Below, piece by piece: positions 15,549-26,851 of a DNA stretch of 64,000 bases. Every line of letters begins with the position of its first letter. Within the stretch, counting starts at the first letter, position 1. Under the pieces are notes generated by a model. It was not told where the DNA came from, searched no databases, and worked only from the letters and a program-made list of their open reading frames with translations. Origin of the DNA: Trichosphaerium sp. ATCC 40318 (taxonomy: Eukaryota > Protista > Tubulinea); contig JALMLS010000577.1 in NCBI GenBank assembly GCA_038496445.1, positions 682,001 through 746,000 of the forward strand. Reading direction: 5' to 3'. A program made the position numbers and the translations under genes.

Positions 15549-18500
15549 ATGTCAATTGATACAGATGATGTAGAGGATTTAAACGCTAGTCCCGCATGGG
15601 AAAGCCAATCTGATAGAGAGTACGATAACGACTGGGGTACTGTCAAAATTGACGGCGAGATAGTGACATGGAACTCCTAGGCGACTTTAGGAGCGAGCAA
15701 ACGTTTAACCCGAAAGAAATGAACAAAGCGCCGCCAACGACGATAAAAGTAACCTCACGCAGAAAAGTGATACTTGGTGTCATCATAGGCGTAGTTGCTA
15801 CCATTATTTTGGTACAGCTCGCAAAATTTATCATTAATAATAACACGTATTGTAGGCGCTTATCATAGGCGAAATCGTAGTAGCATTAAGATCGAAAGCT
15901 TCAAAGAAAGCGGTTAACTGTGAACCACAAGCAAATGCGTCAACGAATGCCAATTGGGCGTCTGTACGCGTAATTATTTTAAATTACAGCTAATCGACTT
16001 GTTTCAGGCAAATACCGCCGTTCGTGCGTTCATGGATGATAAAGCTGATCCTTGCGGAGGTAATTTTTTCCTGCACAATTTGGCTACGGAAGTCTAATTT
16101 CTGTAGATTTTTACCAGTACGCTTGCGGAGGGTTCTTATCAACGCAGAAAATACCATCAGACTCAAATAGATGGGGAGTATTCTCAACAATCGAAAAGAG
16201 CAATGTTGAAATCAAAAAAAAAATCATGACCGCTGGATGGCCTGTACGTATAACTGAGTTAGTCCCTTATACTTGATACTCATATCTTACTAGTTAGTTG
16301 GCCCGCTTTATTCTGCTTGTATGAATGATGCTGGCACTGATAGGGGTGTAGCAGTATTACAACCATACTTGGATGTTATTGACGCTTTAGATTCATCGAA
16401 GGCGTAAGTACCTCTTTATTTGATGTGTTCAGGCTACTGTTTCTCTAATTTCCTTTTCTTTTCAGTGCTATAAAAACGAGCATTGCCCCAGTACTCGCAA
16501 CATTGCATAAGATGTCAGTTGGATCATTTTTCAGTTTCTCAGTTGACTCTTATTCGGTATGATCTTTGTCGGGAAGTATAGTGTTGTTAGGGTTAATGGT
16601 TGTATAGTTTGATCCAGCACATGTTATTGTTCATTTGGACCATGGTGGTATTACACTTTCAAGGACATATTACGTTGATGAGCGTCTTAAGGGGAAAGCA
16701 GAAACTGCAGTAAGTTCTAAGATGCATTTTTTTTTTACTTATTGTGGTAAGATTAAAAAACTGATTCATGATGCAATGGATAATTTAGGCATGACGCTCA
16801 CTGATGAGGTATGTTGTTAATATCATTGTTTTATTTTTACGCTAGCAACAAACCGTTAGAACAACGTACAATTGGTATTAGGTCTAATCTATCTGTTTCT
16901 AGCAAGTATCAGCTATCTACACATTGGAAGCTTTGTTGGCTGTTAATGAAATGCCTACTGCTCAAAGACGTAACCCTTATACTGTAAATAATATCAGAAC
17001 GATAGCTGAAGTTGTATCTATGACTGGAATCGACTTTTCAAAGTATTTTGCTGATATTGGCGTACAAACAAAATATTTGAATCAAATCAATGTTGTTGAT
17101 GTGCCTTTCATGGAAAAACTTGGAGATGTGATGGTTAATAATTCTGATACTGTCAAAAATTACCTAAAATGGCGCGTTGTAAACGCATACGGATCATATC
17201 TTGGCGATGCAATGAAGGTTTGTAATTCTCAAAGCCTTTCTTATGGTTTCGTATTTTGGATGTAACGTCTTTGTAGGACATCCGATTCGCCTTCAAAAAG
17301 ACTATGTATGGGGTTGAAGCACGCTCTGATAAATGGAAAGAGTGCATGTATGGCACAGCAAGTCTACTTGGTGAGCTTGTTGGTCATTATTTTGTGCAAG
17401 AGGCCTTTAGTGTACGCAGCTTTAATTTTTTTTTTTTTTTTTTTTTTGTGAAATCTATTGAAAATTTGGTTGAGTACGAGTTCATAATACTTTCTGTTTT
17501 GTGCGCTTTATCACTAACTGGCTAGAAACTATCAGCAAGTTCTCTTAGCTCAATCGGTCAGAGCATCTGTCTAATACACAGAAGGTTGTGAGTTCAAGTC
17601 TCATAGGGAACATTCAATTTTTTTTAATTTGCATACTTTTTTTTAGTTGGCTTAAAACTTGGAGACTCATAAGTCACTGTCGGGTGACCAATGTTAATTT
17701 TTAATAGGAAGAACAAAAAAACGAAGCTAAACATATCATTAAGAGTGTAGAAAATCAATTTGCTACAAATATAAGAGGCGCATCATGGTTAGATGCTACA
17801 ACAAAAACACGTGCTTTAGCAAAACTTAAAGCAATTACTGATGTTGTTGGATATCCTGATAAGTGGGATGAATACAACGCTATTGTTATGGATAAAGATA
17901 AGCTATTTGAGGCTGCTAAGGAAATGGTAGATCGCTCGTTTGAGCAAACGATTAAAAAACTTGACAAGCCACGTAAGAAAGAATATTTTTTCTCCTTATT
18001 TCTTCTGCAATCTCTGAGGCTCTTTTTCTTACTTCTTTGTAGTTGATAAATCAGAATGGTTTATGACTCCAGATGAAGTTAATGCTTATTATAACCCTGC
18101 TGTTAATGGTATTGTCATTCCAGCTGGTATTCTACGAGTAAGTGTTCTTCTATTTTATTTTTGTATTTTTAGAGTGCTTTGTTTCACTCGTTCTGGTCTG
18201 TTGTTAACAAGTTTGTTTAGGGTCATTTCTATAACCCAGAATTTCCTTTGGCTATGAAATATGGTGGTATTGGGTCTGTGGTTGGCCATGAACTAACACA
18301 TGGGTTTGATGATCAAGGAGCACAATTTGATTTGTATGTTTGTTTTGTACTGTTTACTAGTACCTGTACTAACTTATTTTATGCAGGAACGGTAATTTGT
18401 CGAACTGGTGGACAGCAGAAAGTTACAAACAGTTTAAAGAAAAAGCGAAATGTGTTGTTGATCTATATTCCTCTTACACAGTGTTGAATGGTTCGCGTCA

Positions 18501-19879: not shown

Positions 19880-22800
19880 ATGATAAGTTGTCGGAAAAAT
19901 AGCGCACTGCAGCTACTGCTTGTACTGTCATTTTTTGCCACTTCAGTTGTGGCTTACAAAAACATAACTATACGCACGTGTTAAAGATAGTTTTGATTTT
20001 CTACACTAGCTATTTTCGGATTTTCTGATAGTTTGTAGTTTCTGTATTGAGTTGGGTACCTGGAGGCCAGAACTCAGAGTTTGTTGATCAAATATCGTAA
20101 GTATATACCACTTATCATTGTCCTGGTCGTCAATGATTCAAAATTACGGTATAAATTAACTGTCGTAGAATTCTTTACAACTATTTGGAAGATTGGATGG
20201 TTTCAAACGACGAGCTTATACAAATTGGAGACGAGAAAGTAGGCTTGCAATATCGGTACGATTTGACAAAATAATTGTTTCGTGATGACTTATGACATGT
20301 TATGAAGCATTGAGAATGGCATGGATAACCAAACGCTTATCAATCAGATCTATGAAGACGCTTTGAACGATCCTTCTATTTCTCTTTTCGTTGGTCCAAA
20401 ATCTGGACAATCAGATCCAATCATAGAAATGATGGAGAACGAGCGTCGATTGTTGAGTATGGTTCAAACAACAACACGATTAAAACCACTTACTCTCTTT
20501 TTAAGTGTCGGTTGGCAATTTGTTCAACACAAAACTGTCCAATTCGTCATATGCGTTATCTGTAGGATTGTCTACGGATACTTCTTTTTTTACGTCTCTA
20601 CCAGTGCTTCGTGTAGCTGGTGTTAAAACAATCACTTTAATTTATGGAGAGACAGACGACATTCTATCCGTTAGGTAATTGTTTGCTTTTTTATTTATTG
20701 GATTTTCTACGCATGTGATATGTCTAACGTACAAATGAACAGATGTAAAAGTGAAACCTTTAGATATGAACTCAGGGTGCAAGGATTTGAGATTGTTAGT
20801 GAACATGCATTGAAGGACCGTACGACTACGATCCGGCCTTTTTCGTAGTTTTTTAACTCTGTCTAGCTGATATTTTGTTCGCCTTCACGAGGAAAAATTA
20901 CACGGATTATCCCCTAGATGTACAGAAAAATATAACAGACACGGCATTGCTTGCTATGAAGTATGATGCAGACGCATGGTGAGTCTAAATTAGAGCTTTT
21001 TTTCCCGCATAATTTTACTTTTTTGGAAAAGGAACAAACGTGCTTTCAACTGTTTTTCTGGCTGACCTTTTAACAGGCTCTCGTGTGCTCTTTTAGTAGA
21101 TTCAACTGGTTTAATACTAGAGACTCTACGTGGAGAGGATTATACACCTCGGTATTTTGGATTGACAGAAGCAATTGATGAAATATTGACTTTCGACCAA
21201 GATAATTGGCAATACGTCAGTGCCGGAACTCAAGTAAGCTATTTATGAAACTCTTCAAAAGTGACAAGTGTTAATGCTTCAAAGTACAATCCAAACATGG
21301 AATTTGGAGCCGCAAGGACTCTTGGAATGTTTAACGACTTCAGAGATGATATTGAAGCCTTGAGTGGAGTACCACTCAAAGCTCAGGCTCCTGCTTATGC
21401 AGCAATGTTTGTGATGTTTAAAACGGCTATTGAGAATGTCATATCACAGCAACGTAATAGAGCACCAGTACTTGTAAGTCACATTTAGACTGCAGCCGAA
21501 AAAATTGACACGTGTTTAGTTGGACAGTAACTCAGCCCTAAAACTTGGTGGCAACAGTACCTGTCCTTGTGCTTCTAATAATGTACGTCAATTGATAAGT
21601 AAGATATAAGAGATTAACATGTAGCTTAGATCTATGATTTGCTCTACGATACTATTTTTCAATTCAAGATTGATACTATTTCGGGTCGGTATTCGTGGGA
21701 TTCCAACCGCTTACAACAAAGGTACAATTGAAAAGCAAGTTTCATATCATAGCACTAAAGTTGTGTAGGGAGTGGTTATACATGCAAATACAGCACGAAG
21801 GAAACTTCACACTCATAGGCAAGTAATGTTTTTGTTTGGATTGTAGATACTAACAGGGTTTTTCACTTTCAGGACCACCTGCAACGAAGAGAGCTGACTT
21901 GATTTATCCAATGCCAAAATGGCATGAACGTGTATTTGACCCTCACTATGGTCATTGGACTGAAATCTTGGTTTCATTAGTTGCTATTATACTGCTATGC
22001 GTAAGTATAGGATGGGCTGTATTCTTGGTTGTGAACTTAGCACAACCGAAAGTGAAGGTAACAGAAACTCAACAGTTGAGTCGGCCTACAAGTGTCATTT
22101 TTTTATTGTTTAGGCTTCCTCACCGCTATTCATGGGTTTGATGTTGATCGGTAGTGCATTAGTGTATTTGTCTGTATTTTCTTTACTTCCTAATGTTGTT
22201 TCAACGTTCACGTGTACATTTATGCCTTGGATCCTTGATCTCGGGTTCATTTTATTATTCGGGTATGACACCGACTTTCTTGGTTTTTCTGAACGTTGCT
22301 ACTAGAGTACGATTTTAATGTTTCTATTTAGGCCTTTGTTTGCAAAGACACTTCGTATTGATAGGTTGTACAGTAACAAATCAGCAGACATATTCATGAT
22401 CAGTGATAAAATGGTGTTGTTGTGGGTTGGCATTCTTGTCATTGGTCATATTATTCTGCTTACCATACTGGTATTGTGTTTTTTGTTTCCCAAAATAGCC
22501 ACAGCTTTCGAATACTTACTGTTCTTTAGACAGCCGTTGGAAGGTCTGAGAAACACTTAGTCGTTGTTGATCCTATTCTTGTGTATCAAAACTACTACAC
22601 GTGTACAGCGAGTGTTGCTTACAAAGCGATATTATACATAATCTGTGCATCCAATGTATGTCAACTTTGCCAATCGTTTTTTTTTAAGTGTTTGTATTTC
22701 TCTGTGTACTTATTGTCTTGCTTTATAGGGTATCTTATTATTGGTATGTAGTGTTGTTGCTTTCAGAGTTCGTGCGATACCTATCAAGAGATTCAATGAG

Positions 22801-23226
22801 TCAAAGATTATTTTCTTTGCTGTATACAATGTCACTTTCTTTGCATTCTTAAGCTTTGCCTTGGCAGCAGCAAATATAGACCGTTTCATAAAGTTTGCTC
22901 TAGTAGCAATTTTCATATTGTTTGGAGCAGGTACAATACACATTTCTTCATTTCTGAGAGTAACACGTGTCAATTTTTTACAGGGATCACTGTCAATTCG
23001 TTTTTCCTTCATAAAACACAGGCAGGAAAATTTATGGATTCTGTTGGATCAACCAAGATTTTCTCTGGTAGCATAAATACGTAAGTGTTTTATTATTATT
23101 TTTACACGTGTACAACAATACTTAAGAGAAACCTTTTTTTTTGCATCTTTTCTTTTTTTTTCTTCGTAGTGCCTTACCCTTTTTTGTAATAGTAATACTT
23201 CTTCAGTAAAAGCGCAAGTTGAATAA
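19880..23226 (+). CDS. Class C (GABA-B/Grl-like) G-protein-coupled receptor
   Basis: Signal peptide, large periplasmic-binding-like ectodomain, then 7TM with GFILLFGALFAKTLRI and PIKRFNESKIIFFAVYN, typical of family 3 GPCRs. Confidence 0.88.
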
Positions 23227-23751: not shown

Positions 23752-26052
23752 CTACAAATACAACTTATGTTTTTTGACATACGCCAATACTTTTTTGTGA
23801 AGCATTGTACTGAGCTGTTTCTCATTCTCTTCAAAAGATTGAAAAAGTGACCGAATCGAGGTTGAACTCAGCGTACGCTAAAATATCAGGTGAGTTGAAG
23901 TGACTACACTCAGTTGTACCTCATTACAATCATTGATGATAAAAACACGTTCAGATTCTTTAAAACGTGACATCTTGTGTTCATATCCATTTCGTCTGAG
24001 TGCAGCAAGTTTGTACTTTGAGTCTATAAAGTTGAGTGCAGTTGAGACTGAGTCAGCGCCAACCAATGCAACTAGTGTAACCGGTATACCTATTTTATCA
24101 AGCGGTCAAACGACGTAACAGAGTATTTCGCACATTGTTTGGAGAATATCGCTTGTATGTTATCTAGATATTGTGAATTCCTTAGCTGTGACCTATTTTT
24201 AATGTAAACTTGAAGGTGTTTGAGGAGGAAACAAACCTATCCACCATTATATCTGTGTCTTCTACGGCCTTTTGGACCATTTCATATCGATGGAAGAAAG
24301 GTATATGAGTTCCCTAAAGGTTATTATAACTTATACGGATAGAGTTTTTGATTACTTACGCTTAGTTTTCTACTGACCCATGAATCCTTTGCAAGCGACA
24401 TATAAGTCGCAATAACATTGTATCCTTCTTTAGTAAAATGATTTGAAGCGTCATGAATCACTTTAACATGATTGGTATGAACAGGACAGAACGAACCACT
24501 AACAAAAGGGTAAGATCCAAAATAAGAAAAAACGGAGAACAACCTTAACACTAGCACTAGGTTTTTGGAAGGATCAGCTTCAAACTTCTAAGAAAGGTAT
24601 TAGTTTATATATTCTATCAATAGTATGTTTATACCTTAATCTTGTTGTATGGAGTGCTTGAATAGAAGGGGTACTTTGGAAGAACCTTACCAACAATATC
24701 ACTTAAAAGTTTTGAACATATTGTATCAATCTTTTTCAAAGCAGCTTGTGTACCTAAATAGAAACTAAATCAACGACTAAGTGTTTTTTTACCACGGAAA
24801 AATACAAGTTTTTACAGCTATTGTTATCGAAAAAAACCCCACAAAGTTAATATGAGCGAAATAGTGGTGGCTTGATTCTTGTTGACAACTTTTTTCGTTT
24901 GTGGTGGAACTTACCAATGTTATTGTAAAAATACATGTTAAAGTAAGCCAAGTACATTTGATGGCGTTCTTCAAATCGGTTTGTTTTAGGTATAATCTGG
25001 TGGTATGAGTCCATAAAAGCCTTTGGAGGCGGTTTCCACAGGCTCATAAAACTGAGTTCGAATTCACTAATTTTGTAGTAAGTATCGTGTTTTTAACGGT
25101 CGTTAGTTGTACTTGTGGGCGTAACAAGCTTGTGAATCAAACAATACTATTTCTCCCTTATCAGTGACTCCCCAGTTTTCAGAATGCATATCTCCATGCG
25201 TAAGAACCGGCTTAATTGTACTTTCTATGCCTGTATTGACAAGTTATCAAAGACCGTTCGATTTTGTCTTTATGATACCTTCAAAGAACCAAGGTAAGCA
25301 ATCCAATACTTGGTCAAGCATACAGCAGATAGGGTAAGCTTCTGGGTGTAAATTTGTTTTTAACTGAGTTACGCCTGGAGCAAATCTTTGTTCCTTAAAA
25401 AATGTGATCCAGTTTTCTTCCCAACCATTCTTTGTGGTCAAATTATCGGCAACAATATTGTGTTGGAACCCAAACTTGCCATCTACCGAACATTTTAATG
25501 TTAGGAATATATATGCTAGCAAATATTTGTTTGTAACGTACTATCGGAGATTCCCTGAGAATGCAATTGAGCTAGCTTTTTACCAAATTCAACATGATTC
25601 TTTGATGTCTTTTTCACGAAGTTAAAGTACTCTATTAAAATAAAGTATCCTTGAATAGATACTAAATCTCCATGGCAGAACACCTTGGGAGTACGAAAAA
25701 TGCCCGTATCAGCAATAGAATGCAAACTATTGATTTCCAATTCAAGCGCTTGTTTTCCTGTTTTATTCCTATTTATCTATGAATTCGTGAGACTAAAGAT
25801 CTTGTGTGAAGTACGGTATACCTTCAAAAAGTAGGAATCTCCATTCTTTGTTGTAATGAAGAAGCATATATTCATTTTTGCTTTCACAGGTCTTACGTCA
25901 ATATCTAGCCCAAGGTGTTTTTGTAGTAGTATATTCTCAGAAATCTCTTTTGTTAGTTGATTGACTGTCATTGCCATTCGCTTATAAAACTGTTTCTGAG
26001 GTGTTGCTACAGCAGATTTCTTTGCTTTTGGAATAGTCGGAGCACTATCCAT
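23752..26052 (-). CDS. Fructosamine-3-kinase-like domain fused to NMNAT/NadD-type nucleotidyltransferase
   Basis: Kinase motifs: YFLK, FGKKLAQLH, FGF..N...NGWEENWITFFKEQR, LTHGDMHSENWG, FDSQACYAH, EFEL. Transferase motifs: SGSFCPVHTNH, LVGADS, LSSTSIR, VLAYVKKHKLY*. Confidence 0.85.
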
Positions 26053-26851
26053 ATCGACACCCTCGGCTATAAGCAATTGTTGCTGTAACCTTCCACGCGA
26101 AGTTGCTGTAATAATACCAGTATTAGGCTTTTGATACCTCCGCTCACTTACATTTTCTTGTCTGCAGCGACGCTCCAATAGAACGTTTGCCAGCGTAAAT
26201 AACGCGCCACCATGGTATATCTCTACTTGAAGACGGGACACCTCAACAATATGTTGTTTAAAGTTTTTCATTGAAAAATGACATTAAGAGATTAATCAGT
26301 TATTTTCAAGGGCTTTTAAGAAACGCCGTACGATTTATAAAACCTGCTGTAGCTCTTGCGCCAAGCGGTACGCCAGCTGCACTCGCTAATTGTTGGAATG
26401 TAACTACAGTCCCCTTTTTGTTGGTTAAAACGACCACTGACGCTTAAATAAACGCACTTTAGGTACTTTAAGCAGTGCTGTGGTGTATTTATTAGTTGGT
26501 TTCTCTTTCAAACGTTTCAGCCTCTTTTTAGGCGGTTCTGACATACCACGAAGTTAGATTACCTTGCTAGGCGTTGAGTTTATGAAAAGTTGACAACTTG
26601 TAACCTTGTATGGCTACCTTAACAGACAGAACTTAAAAAGCACGTATCAGTTTCTTTACTCCTTTGGTAGTTTGAGAATCCTTTATCATTCCATTTTCCG
26701 AACAGTATAAAAGTGTCAAATGATTGTACACAACTTTGCTTAACAATTCAGAGAATGTTCGCTAATCAGGGACGCCCCTGAGCTCAATACTTTGATTTAA
26801 GTGGTGGACAAGGTCTATCGAGTGGTATATTTACCTCTATTGAATACCAAC

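Follow-up and report, generated by a model that had tools for sequence, protein, structure and literature searches.

In enterobacteria and Haemophilus, NAD synthesis by a kinase step followed by an adenylyltransferase step is served by NadR, which joins a helix-turn-helix DNA-binding domain to a nicotinamide mononucleotide (NMN) adenylyltransferase (NMNAT) and a ribosylnicotinamide kinase. Here, we describe a gene of comparable composition in a 64,000-nt stretch of DNA from the protist Trichosphaerium sp. ATCC 40318 (contig JALMLS010000577.1, positions 682,001 to 746,000; hereafter, the window), whose base composition (37% G+C) and short GT-AG introns mark it as eukaryotic DNA. Like NadR, this fusion gene is predicted to place DNA-binding, kinase, and NMN-adenylyltransferase-type domains in one polypeptide. 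The parts and their arrangement nonetheless differ. The order in NadR is helix-turn-helix, NMNAT, and kinase, whereas that of the fusion gene is DNA-binding domain, kinase, and NMNAT. The NadR kinase is a P-loop riboside kinase, whereas that of the fusion gene has the fructosamine 3-kinase (FN3K)/APH-type fold (PF03881). In place of the Xre-type repressor helix-turn-helix of NadR, the fusion gene, in a eukaryotic host, carries a putative lesion-flipping alkyltransferase-like (ATL) domain (PF01035), and its adenylyltransferase best matches NadD (TIGR00482) rather than the NadR type. Judged by sequence, the fusion gene is an analogue of NadR and not a member of its family. Our interpretation, which we hold with moderate confidence, is that one spliced gene encodes, in order, a nuclear localization signal (NLS)-like tail, an ATL domain, an FN3K-type kinase, and a NadD/NMNAT-type domain.

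Precedents for joining a DNA-lesion sensor to an enzyme come from the alkyltransferase family. ATL and AGT domains occur fused to the repair enzyme EndoV, and PARP1 has been linked to AGT (PMC10779285). In a 2023 review of the family, EndoV and a histone-like domain are the only fusion partners named (PMC10779285). Archaeal ATL-EndoV and AGT-EndoV proteins follow the same principle of a lesion sensor coupled to a catalytic domain; the kinase and adenylyltransferase partners of the fusion gene are not among the fusions in that review. Our search for literature on fructosamine kinase combined with NMNAT or ATL found no paper. The ATL-FN3K-NMNAT architecture appears to be a new combination of known families. 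The first-pass annotation of this locus, which had reported a kinase fused to an NMNAT-type domain, likewise did not recognize the architecture as characterized, and neither a description nor a homologue of it emerged from protein, metagenome, or literature searches. If our interpretation is correct, the gene would extend the known ATL/AGT fusions by a partner of a third type. The roles of the FN3K family beyond protein deglycation are an open question, and human FN3K binds NAD compounds for no known reason (PMC11148063); an FN3K-NMNAT fusion on a DNA-lesion sensor offers a concrete hypothesis tying FN3K to NAD. A further hint is that, in some protists, the sensing of alkylation damage may be coupled to local synthesis of a nucleotide cofactor.

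An exon-by-exon model places the fusion gene on the minus strand from 26544 to 23752, with 15 exons (X1 to X15) and 658 codons. All model introns are GT-AG and measure 42 to 59 nt, apart from two longer introns of 90 and 161 nt. The first-pass annotation had confined the gene to 23752–26052. The 12 exons in that region do read as a single frame, and the motifs quoted from it all lie on the minus strand where they had been placed; however, three more exons were added upstream, and the gene continues to an ATG at 26544, four codons downstream of an in-frame TAA, with an ATL domain in front of the kinase. The kinase and NMNAT-type domains are retained from that earlier account, whereas its bipartite makeup is not, the ATL domain and NLS-like tail having been overlooked. 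Several modeling choices were discarded along the way: a start at 26271 (MKNFKQ), whose open reading frame merges exon X4 with intronic sequence and with sequence that is out of frame; an acceptor at 24180 for exon X13, where cDNA backs 24192; and 30-nt introns at two sites, replaced by introns of 42 to 44 nt.

The kinase and NMNAT-type exons constitute one transcription unit. RNA evidence was drawn from two public runs, X1 and X2, with spliced contigs in run X2, which is 18 Mb in size; such contigs tend to lose rare variants. Nine model junctions, the kinase-to-NMNAT one included, are present in the spliced run X2 contigs. The most extensive evidence is a 779-nt spliced contig (record 4) that extends from exon X7 through exon X15 and splices out 25067–25112, 24588–24634, 24499–24543, 24314–24359, 24193–24236, approximately 24090–24133, and 23878–23919. 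Of these, 24588–24634 is intron 9, a 47-nt GT-AG intron between the kinase half and the NMNAT half. In record 4, two kinase exon segments of 115 nt each precede it, and NMNAT exons totaling over 500 nt follow it. Because record 4 joins both halves across this spliced intron, they reside on one spliced RNA. Two separate transcripts had been named in the first-pass annotation as grounds for abandoning the fusion; instead, a single spliced contig carries both halves. Moreover, after its last preceding stop, the NMNAT frame contains no ATG before the HxxH motif is reached, and exon X9 likewise lacks an in-frame ATG, so a stand-alone NMNAT is not translatable.

The remaining transcript evidence concerns individual junctions. 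Record 5 covers exon X6 (25279–25482), confirming the X6-X7 junction and touching the X5-X6 junction as an 8-nt loose end, while the X7-X8 junction is confirmed by a run X2 contig and the X11-X12 junction is also found in run X1. Record 3 continues past the stop codon to 23713 as 3′ untranslated region. The X13-X14 joint in run X2 is shifted by one base from the model, leaving a 44-nt intron and an unaffected frame in either case. This shift, at 24134, is consistent with run X2 carrying G instead of T as the final base of exon X13, which would change a Cys codon to Gly.

At the N-terminus, exon X1 (26467–26544) supplies the start codon and a basic run, PPKKRLKRLKEK (aa 4–15), that we infer to be an NLS-like tail; its splice to exon X2 across a 53-nt GT-AG intron is predicted. 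For domain assignment, exons were submitted singly to family and structure searches, and the joined 658-aa model was aligned locally (Smith-Waterman) to the annotated E. coli K-12 proteins YbaZ, YniA, and NadD, with none of 300 shuffles scoring as high in any of the three comparisons. Exon X2 (26332–26413) matched PF01035 at profile positions 16–39 of 81 (E 0.027) and TIGR00589 ogt (E 0.023). Exon X3 (26152–26241), bounded by predicted GT-AG introns of 90 and 46 nt, matched PF01035 at positions 48–65 of 81 (E 0.13). The two PF01035 matches are colinear and contribute 14.8 and 12.6 bits, against a cut-off of 27. All six PDB matches to exon X2 are MGMT/Ada proteins, and the exon aligns to residues 109–133 of human AGT. 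Within the helix-turn-helix, the arginine finger (human R128) is retained, as part of GARATAG, with GARA in place of AARA. The active-site loop in exon X3, IPWWRV, aligns to LPWHRV of YbaZ, with Trp at the position of the acceptor cysteine. Substitution of the acceptor Cys of PCHRV, usually by Trp, is the hallmark of ATL proteins (PMC10779285), and it is on this basis that we assign the domain to the ATL class.

Alignment of the joined model agrees with this assignment. E. coli YbaZ, itself an ATL protein, aligned over residues 21–112 of 129 with a score of 108.5 (z=12.7). The predicted domain shares with S. pombe Atl1 and E. coli YbaZ the MGMT-type helix-turn-helix, the arginine finger, and the Trp in place of the acceptor Cys; it differs from them in the residue at the flipping tyrosine, discussed below, and in a Trp where PWHRV has His. 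The YbaZ alignment stops at LLIAEGV and the YniA alignment begins at LLQKHLG, both within exon X4 (25822–26105). This single open exon of 94 codons leads from the last part of the ATL domain through a linker rich in Lys and Pro into the beginning of the kinase N-lobe (FLK), so the ATL-kinase join requires no splice. The N-terminal part is accordingly predicted to be an ATL DNA base-flipping domain without the acceptor cysteine.

The central part was compared with PF03881 (Fructosamin_kin). Exons X5 (25542–25776), X6, X7 (25113–25230), and X8 scored 36.2, 26.0, 26.4, and 28.8 bits, respectively, each above the gathering cut-off of 22.4. The matches of exons X5, X6, and X7 occupy profile positions 50–117, 122–160, and 184–219, and all four exons are colinear over positions 50–268 of 288. 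Exon X5 corresponds to the kinase N-lobe, with the alpha-C Glu and the hinge; exon X6 opens the C-lobe; exon X7 encodes the catalytic loop HGDMHSEN (aa 336–343) and the metal-binding Asp of LFDSQ (aa 354–358); exon X8, in its in-frame form (24915–25066), encodes C-terminal kinase helices; and exon X9 (24635–24753), which is open in the model frame alone and is covered by record 4, would complete the kinase and provide the linker to the NMNAT-type domain. E. coli YniA, an FN3K-family member, aligned colinearly to the model over residues 7–259 of 286 (score 164.5, z=19.1). Among solved structures, Arabidopsis ribulosamine 3-kinase (6OID) and human FN3K (9CX8) lie closest, and exon X5 matched both.

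Exon X7 aligns to residues 212–245 of 6OID, pairing HGDMHSEN and LFDSQ with HGDLWSGN and ILDPA and retaining the equivalents of human FN3K D217 and D234, which are the catalytic and metal-binding aspartates (PMC11754801). Together with the Lys of FLK, the Glu, and the Asn of HGDMHSEN, the expected catalytic residues are in place. With the FN3K and FN3K-RP proteins compared (9CX8, 6OID, and YniA), the fusion-gene kinase shares the catalytic HGD together with the Asn and the Asp that binds metal. It departs from these proteins in being fused at both ends, in having His (HGDMH) instead of the FN3K-specific Trp219, in the apparent replacement of His288, and in the loss of the glycine-rich loop. 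The first of these substitutions has been made in the human enzyme, where W219H is hyperactive and W219F is dead (PMC11754801). The central part is therefore assigned as a divergent FN3K-family kinase with its catalytic residues retained.

The C-terminal part begins with exon X10 (24544–24587), whose two junctions are both present in record 4 and whose predicted first beta-strand (NLVLVL) aligns to the N-terminus of NadD. Exon X11 (24360–24498) bears GSFCPVHTNH (aa 470–479; 24497–24468), a nucleotidyltransferase motif of the (H/T)xxH type, and matched NCBIfam TIGR00482 (nicotinic acid mononucleotide [NaMN]/NMN adenylyltransferase) at profile positions 4–41 of 194 (E 2.3e-4, 21.3 bits), with PF01467 (E 0.1) and NadR family models as weaker matches. 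Exon X12 (24237–24313), with both junctions in record 4, falls inside the colinear NadD alignment and is followed by exon X13 (24134–24192), whose acceptor at 24192 is backed by the run X2 joints. Exon X14 (23920–24089), covered by record 4, contains LVGADSV (GADS, aa 571–574), aligned to IIGQDSL of NadD. Exon X15 (23752–23877), preceded by a 42-nt intron confirmed by cDNA, encodes SSTSIR (ISxTxxR-type; aa 621–626; 23868–23851) and the C-terminus KHKLYL with the stop codon (23772–23752); it matched TIGR00482 at positions 161–194 of 194 (E 3.5e-3, 17.4 bits). These scores, obtained with single exons, lie far under the curated equivalog cut-off of 112 bits. Exon X14 alone matched no family. In single-exon phmmer searches of the PDB, FN3K was retrieved for exons X5 and X7 and MGMT for exon X2, with no NMNAT structure for exons X11, X14, or X15 and no structure of any kind for exon X3.

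Alignment of the joined model is more informative for this region. E. coli NadD, the NaMN adenylyltransferase, aligned over residues 1–212 of 213 with a score of 96.5 (z=10.7). GSFCPVHTNH pairs with GGTFDPVHYGH, retaining both His of HxxH, and LSSTSIR pairs with ISATIIR, retaining the Ser, Thr, and Arg of SSTSIR. Because the alignment runs end to end, the C-terminal part represents a complete domain rather than a mere pair of motifs, and we assign it, on homology, as a NadD/NMNAT-family adenylyltransferase with both signature motifs. It shares the HxxH, SxTxxR, and GxDS motifs with NadD and eukaryotic NMNAT, and differs from these in forming the C-terminal domain of a larger protein and in its HTNH motif. 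Its candidate mononucleotide-binding positions differ as well, so the substrate may not be the same.

Relatives of the fusion gene are scarce. A full-library HMMER search of 1.8 billion proteins with exon X5 returned a single match, a 137-aa JGI fragment (P0001) that is 33% identical. Its source is a 977-nt metagenome contig (L001; JGI sample 3300051389) with 38% G+C, too short to reveal the architecture. The coding region on this contig is interrupted by an intron, and its catalytic loop, LLHGDLSCNW, also lacks the FN3K Trp; the contig probably derives from a related protist. Word-index protein searches with the open reading frame around exon X11, with the 137-aa fragment, and with a 164-aa open reading frame around exon X4 retrieved nothing besides the query. 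Metagenome scans with an alignment of exon X5 and the fragment and with exon X14, together with a viral scan, gave no confirmed relative, and the ESM Atlas yielded only generic FN3K/APH clusters, with no information on architecture.

Several observations weigh against the four-part protein described above, the most serious of which concerns the reading frame at intron 8. The sole cDNA contig across exon X8 uses a donor at 24955 (AT|GTACTT), 41 nt upstream of the model donor at 24914 (G|GTAAGT). The observed intron spans 24754–24955 (202 nt), as opposed to 24754–24914 (161 nt) for the in-frame intron, and exon X8 is shortened to 24956–25066. This splice shifts the frame into a stop in exon X9, yielding a 409-aa product and leaving the NMNAT exons untranslated. 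No run X2 contig covers 24915–24955, and a small matrix built from the other donors of the gene gives 6.6 for donor 24955 and 4.6 for the in-frame donor. The two halves are thus shown on one transcript, whereas the in-frame 658-aa isoform is inferred, because the alternative donor breaks the frame before the NMNAT part. Beyond the splice at intron 8, the splices among the ATL exons (X1 to X4) have no RNA support in either run, and a run X1 contig (26321–26400) covers exon X2 and extends 11 nt into the next intron; unspliced RNA or DNA in run X1 could account for it. The flipping tyrosine of the ATL domain (Tyr114) is replaced by Phe. In the kinase, the glycine-rich loop is absent, and the helix matching the His288 region reads YFYNNIG, with no His, a comparison made without residue-level alignment to human FN3K. 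Human His288 recognizes the substrate amine nitrogen (PMC11754801); given its apparent absence and the missing glycine-rich loop, the kinase substrate may not be a classical fructosamine. Finally, no orthologue of the fusion was found in the protein, metagenome, or viral searches, and the function proposed below is drawn by analogy.

The splicing data bear most directly on whether the fusion is productive at all. It is conceivable that the frame-shifted mRNA is the main form, so that the locus makes either an ATL-kinase protein of approximately 409 aa or, through mRNA decay, nothing, with the NMNAT exons an untranslated relic or a part rarely used via regulated splicing. Such an unproductive or decaying fusion would match the only contig across the site, a product that ends in exon X9, and an alternative donor that is at least as good by the small matrix. 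The coding content of the region argues otherwise. Including the 14 codons that the observed isoform omits lifts exon X8 from 19.4 to 28.8 bits against PF03881 (+9.4) and extends its match to profile position 268; this gain indicates that the skipped codons are coding, and the truncation would be expected to cut conserved C-lobe helices of the kinase. Downstream, exons X9 to X15 maintain approximately 244 open codons after cDNA-confirmed splicing, with both catalytic motifs retained and an end-to-end alignment to NadD. The loss of rare variants from contigs and the very small size of run X2 also temper the absence of the in-frame form, which is at best a minor form in that run. On balance, an unproductive fusion seems unlikely, and we consider it likely that the in-frame isoform (donor 24914) is translated into the 658-aa protein. 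If the frame-shifting splice is instead the main form, the locus would be a fusion gene controlled or silenced by alternative donor choice. The presence of competing 5′ splice sites 41 nt apart in exon X8 may point to regulated unproductive splicing of the fusion gene.

For the 658-aa protein, we tentatively prefer a specific mechanism by analogy with NadR. The ATL domain and NLS-like tail would anchor the enzyme on nuclear DNA, probably where O6-alkylguanine-type lesions occur. The kinase would then phosphorylate a sugar linked through nitrogen, for instance a compound resembling nicotinamide riboside, to an NMN-type mononucleotide, and the adenylyltransferase would convert the phospho-sugar to an NAD-type dinucleotide. 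NAD could thus be supplied where alkylation damage drives its use by PARP-type enzymes. The binding of NAD compounds by human FN3K (PMC11148063) and the link between PARP1 and AGT (PMC10779285) give this mechanism some context. Such sequential kinase and adenylyltransferase synthesis of NAD at alkylation damage would reproduce the logic of NadR from non-homologous parts; we offer it as one possibility and do not regard it as the expected outcome.

A different use of the same domains is deglycation of chromatin or DNA, to which we assign a similarly low probability as to an unproductive fusion. The ATL domain would position the FN3K-type kinase at DNA or histones to phosphorylate Amadori-type adducts (e.g., ribulosamines derived from ADP-ribose) and so release them, and the NMNAT-type domain would act as an NAD supplier or chaperone instead of catalyzing a second step. 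This possibility draws on membership in the FN3K family with intact catalytic residues, on the closest solved structure (6OID) being a protein-ribulosamine 3-kinase, on the established role of FN3K as a protein-repair kinase (PMC11754801), and on the ATL domain and NLS-like tail. The apparent loss of His288 and the change of Trp219 to His, however, point to an altered substrate, and deglycation offers no reason for a covalent link to an adenylyltransferase. Less likely still is that the protein is a lesion-tethered enzyme of an undescribed kind, held by its ATL domain on damaged nuclear DNA, which would use a riboside to produce NAD there or would phosphorylate and then adenylylate a sugar-bearing adduct itself. 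In either case, it would be the first natural "Rosetta stone" fusion to connect FN3K-type kinases with both NAD metabolism and alkylation-damage sensing.

We also considered that the protein might be a scaffold in which one or both catalytic domains are inactive and sense a ligand (e.g., the level of NAD or ATP), with this sensing coupled to DNA binding, akin to the regulatory side of NadR. The lost glycine-rich loop of the kinase and HTNH in place of HxGH would suit such a pseudoenzyme, as would the high divergence of all three domains, given a single match to exon X5 among 1.8 billion proteins and NMNAT exons that individually retrieve no NMNAT from the PDB. Against this, all essential residues that could be mapped are retained (the D217 and D234 equivalents, the FLK Lys, the His residues of HxxH, and the Ser, Thr, and Arg of SSTSIR), and the His at position 219 is activating in human FN3K (PMC11754801), which makes a pseudoenzyme improbable. 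Least plausible is a soluble enzyme unrelated to DNA that uses its two activities in turn, phosphorylating and then nucleotidylating a metabolite or xenobiotic (for NDP-sugar or amine formation or antibiotic inactivation), the free cytosolic role raised in the first-pass annotation: an APH-like-fold kinase does adjoin a nucleotidyltransferase in one frame, and NadR, RibF, and HldE count in its favor as kinase-nucleotidyltransferase precedents, but the N-terminal ATL domain and basic NLS-like tail argue for a DNA or chromatin role, and the best C-terminal family matches are NaMN/NMN adenylyltransferases, not sugar or choline cytidylyltransferases.

The 64-kb window contains no further copy of the fusion gene, and an Rfam search over its whole length identified two tRNAs and nothing else. 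The neighboring protein-coding genes give no hint as to function. At its 3′ end, the fusion gene meets converging exons of a family C G protein-coupled receptor (22318–23076, plus strand; Pfam 7tm_3, E 2e-6 and 1.5e-4). Farther away, an M13 metallopeptidase exon (16924–17262, plus strand; Peptidase_M13_N, E 7e-15) adjoins a tRNA-Ile gene at 17539–17612.

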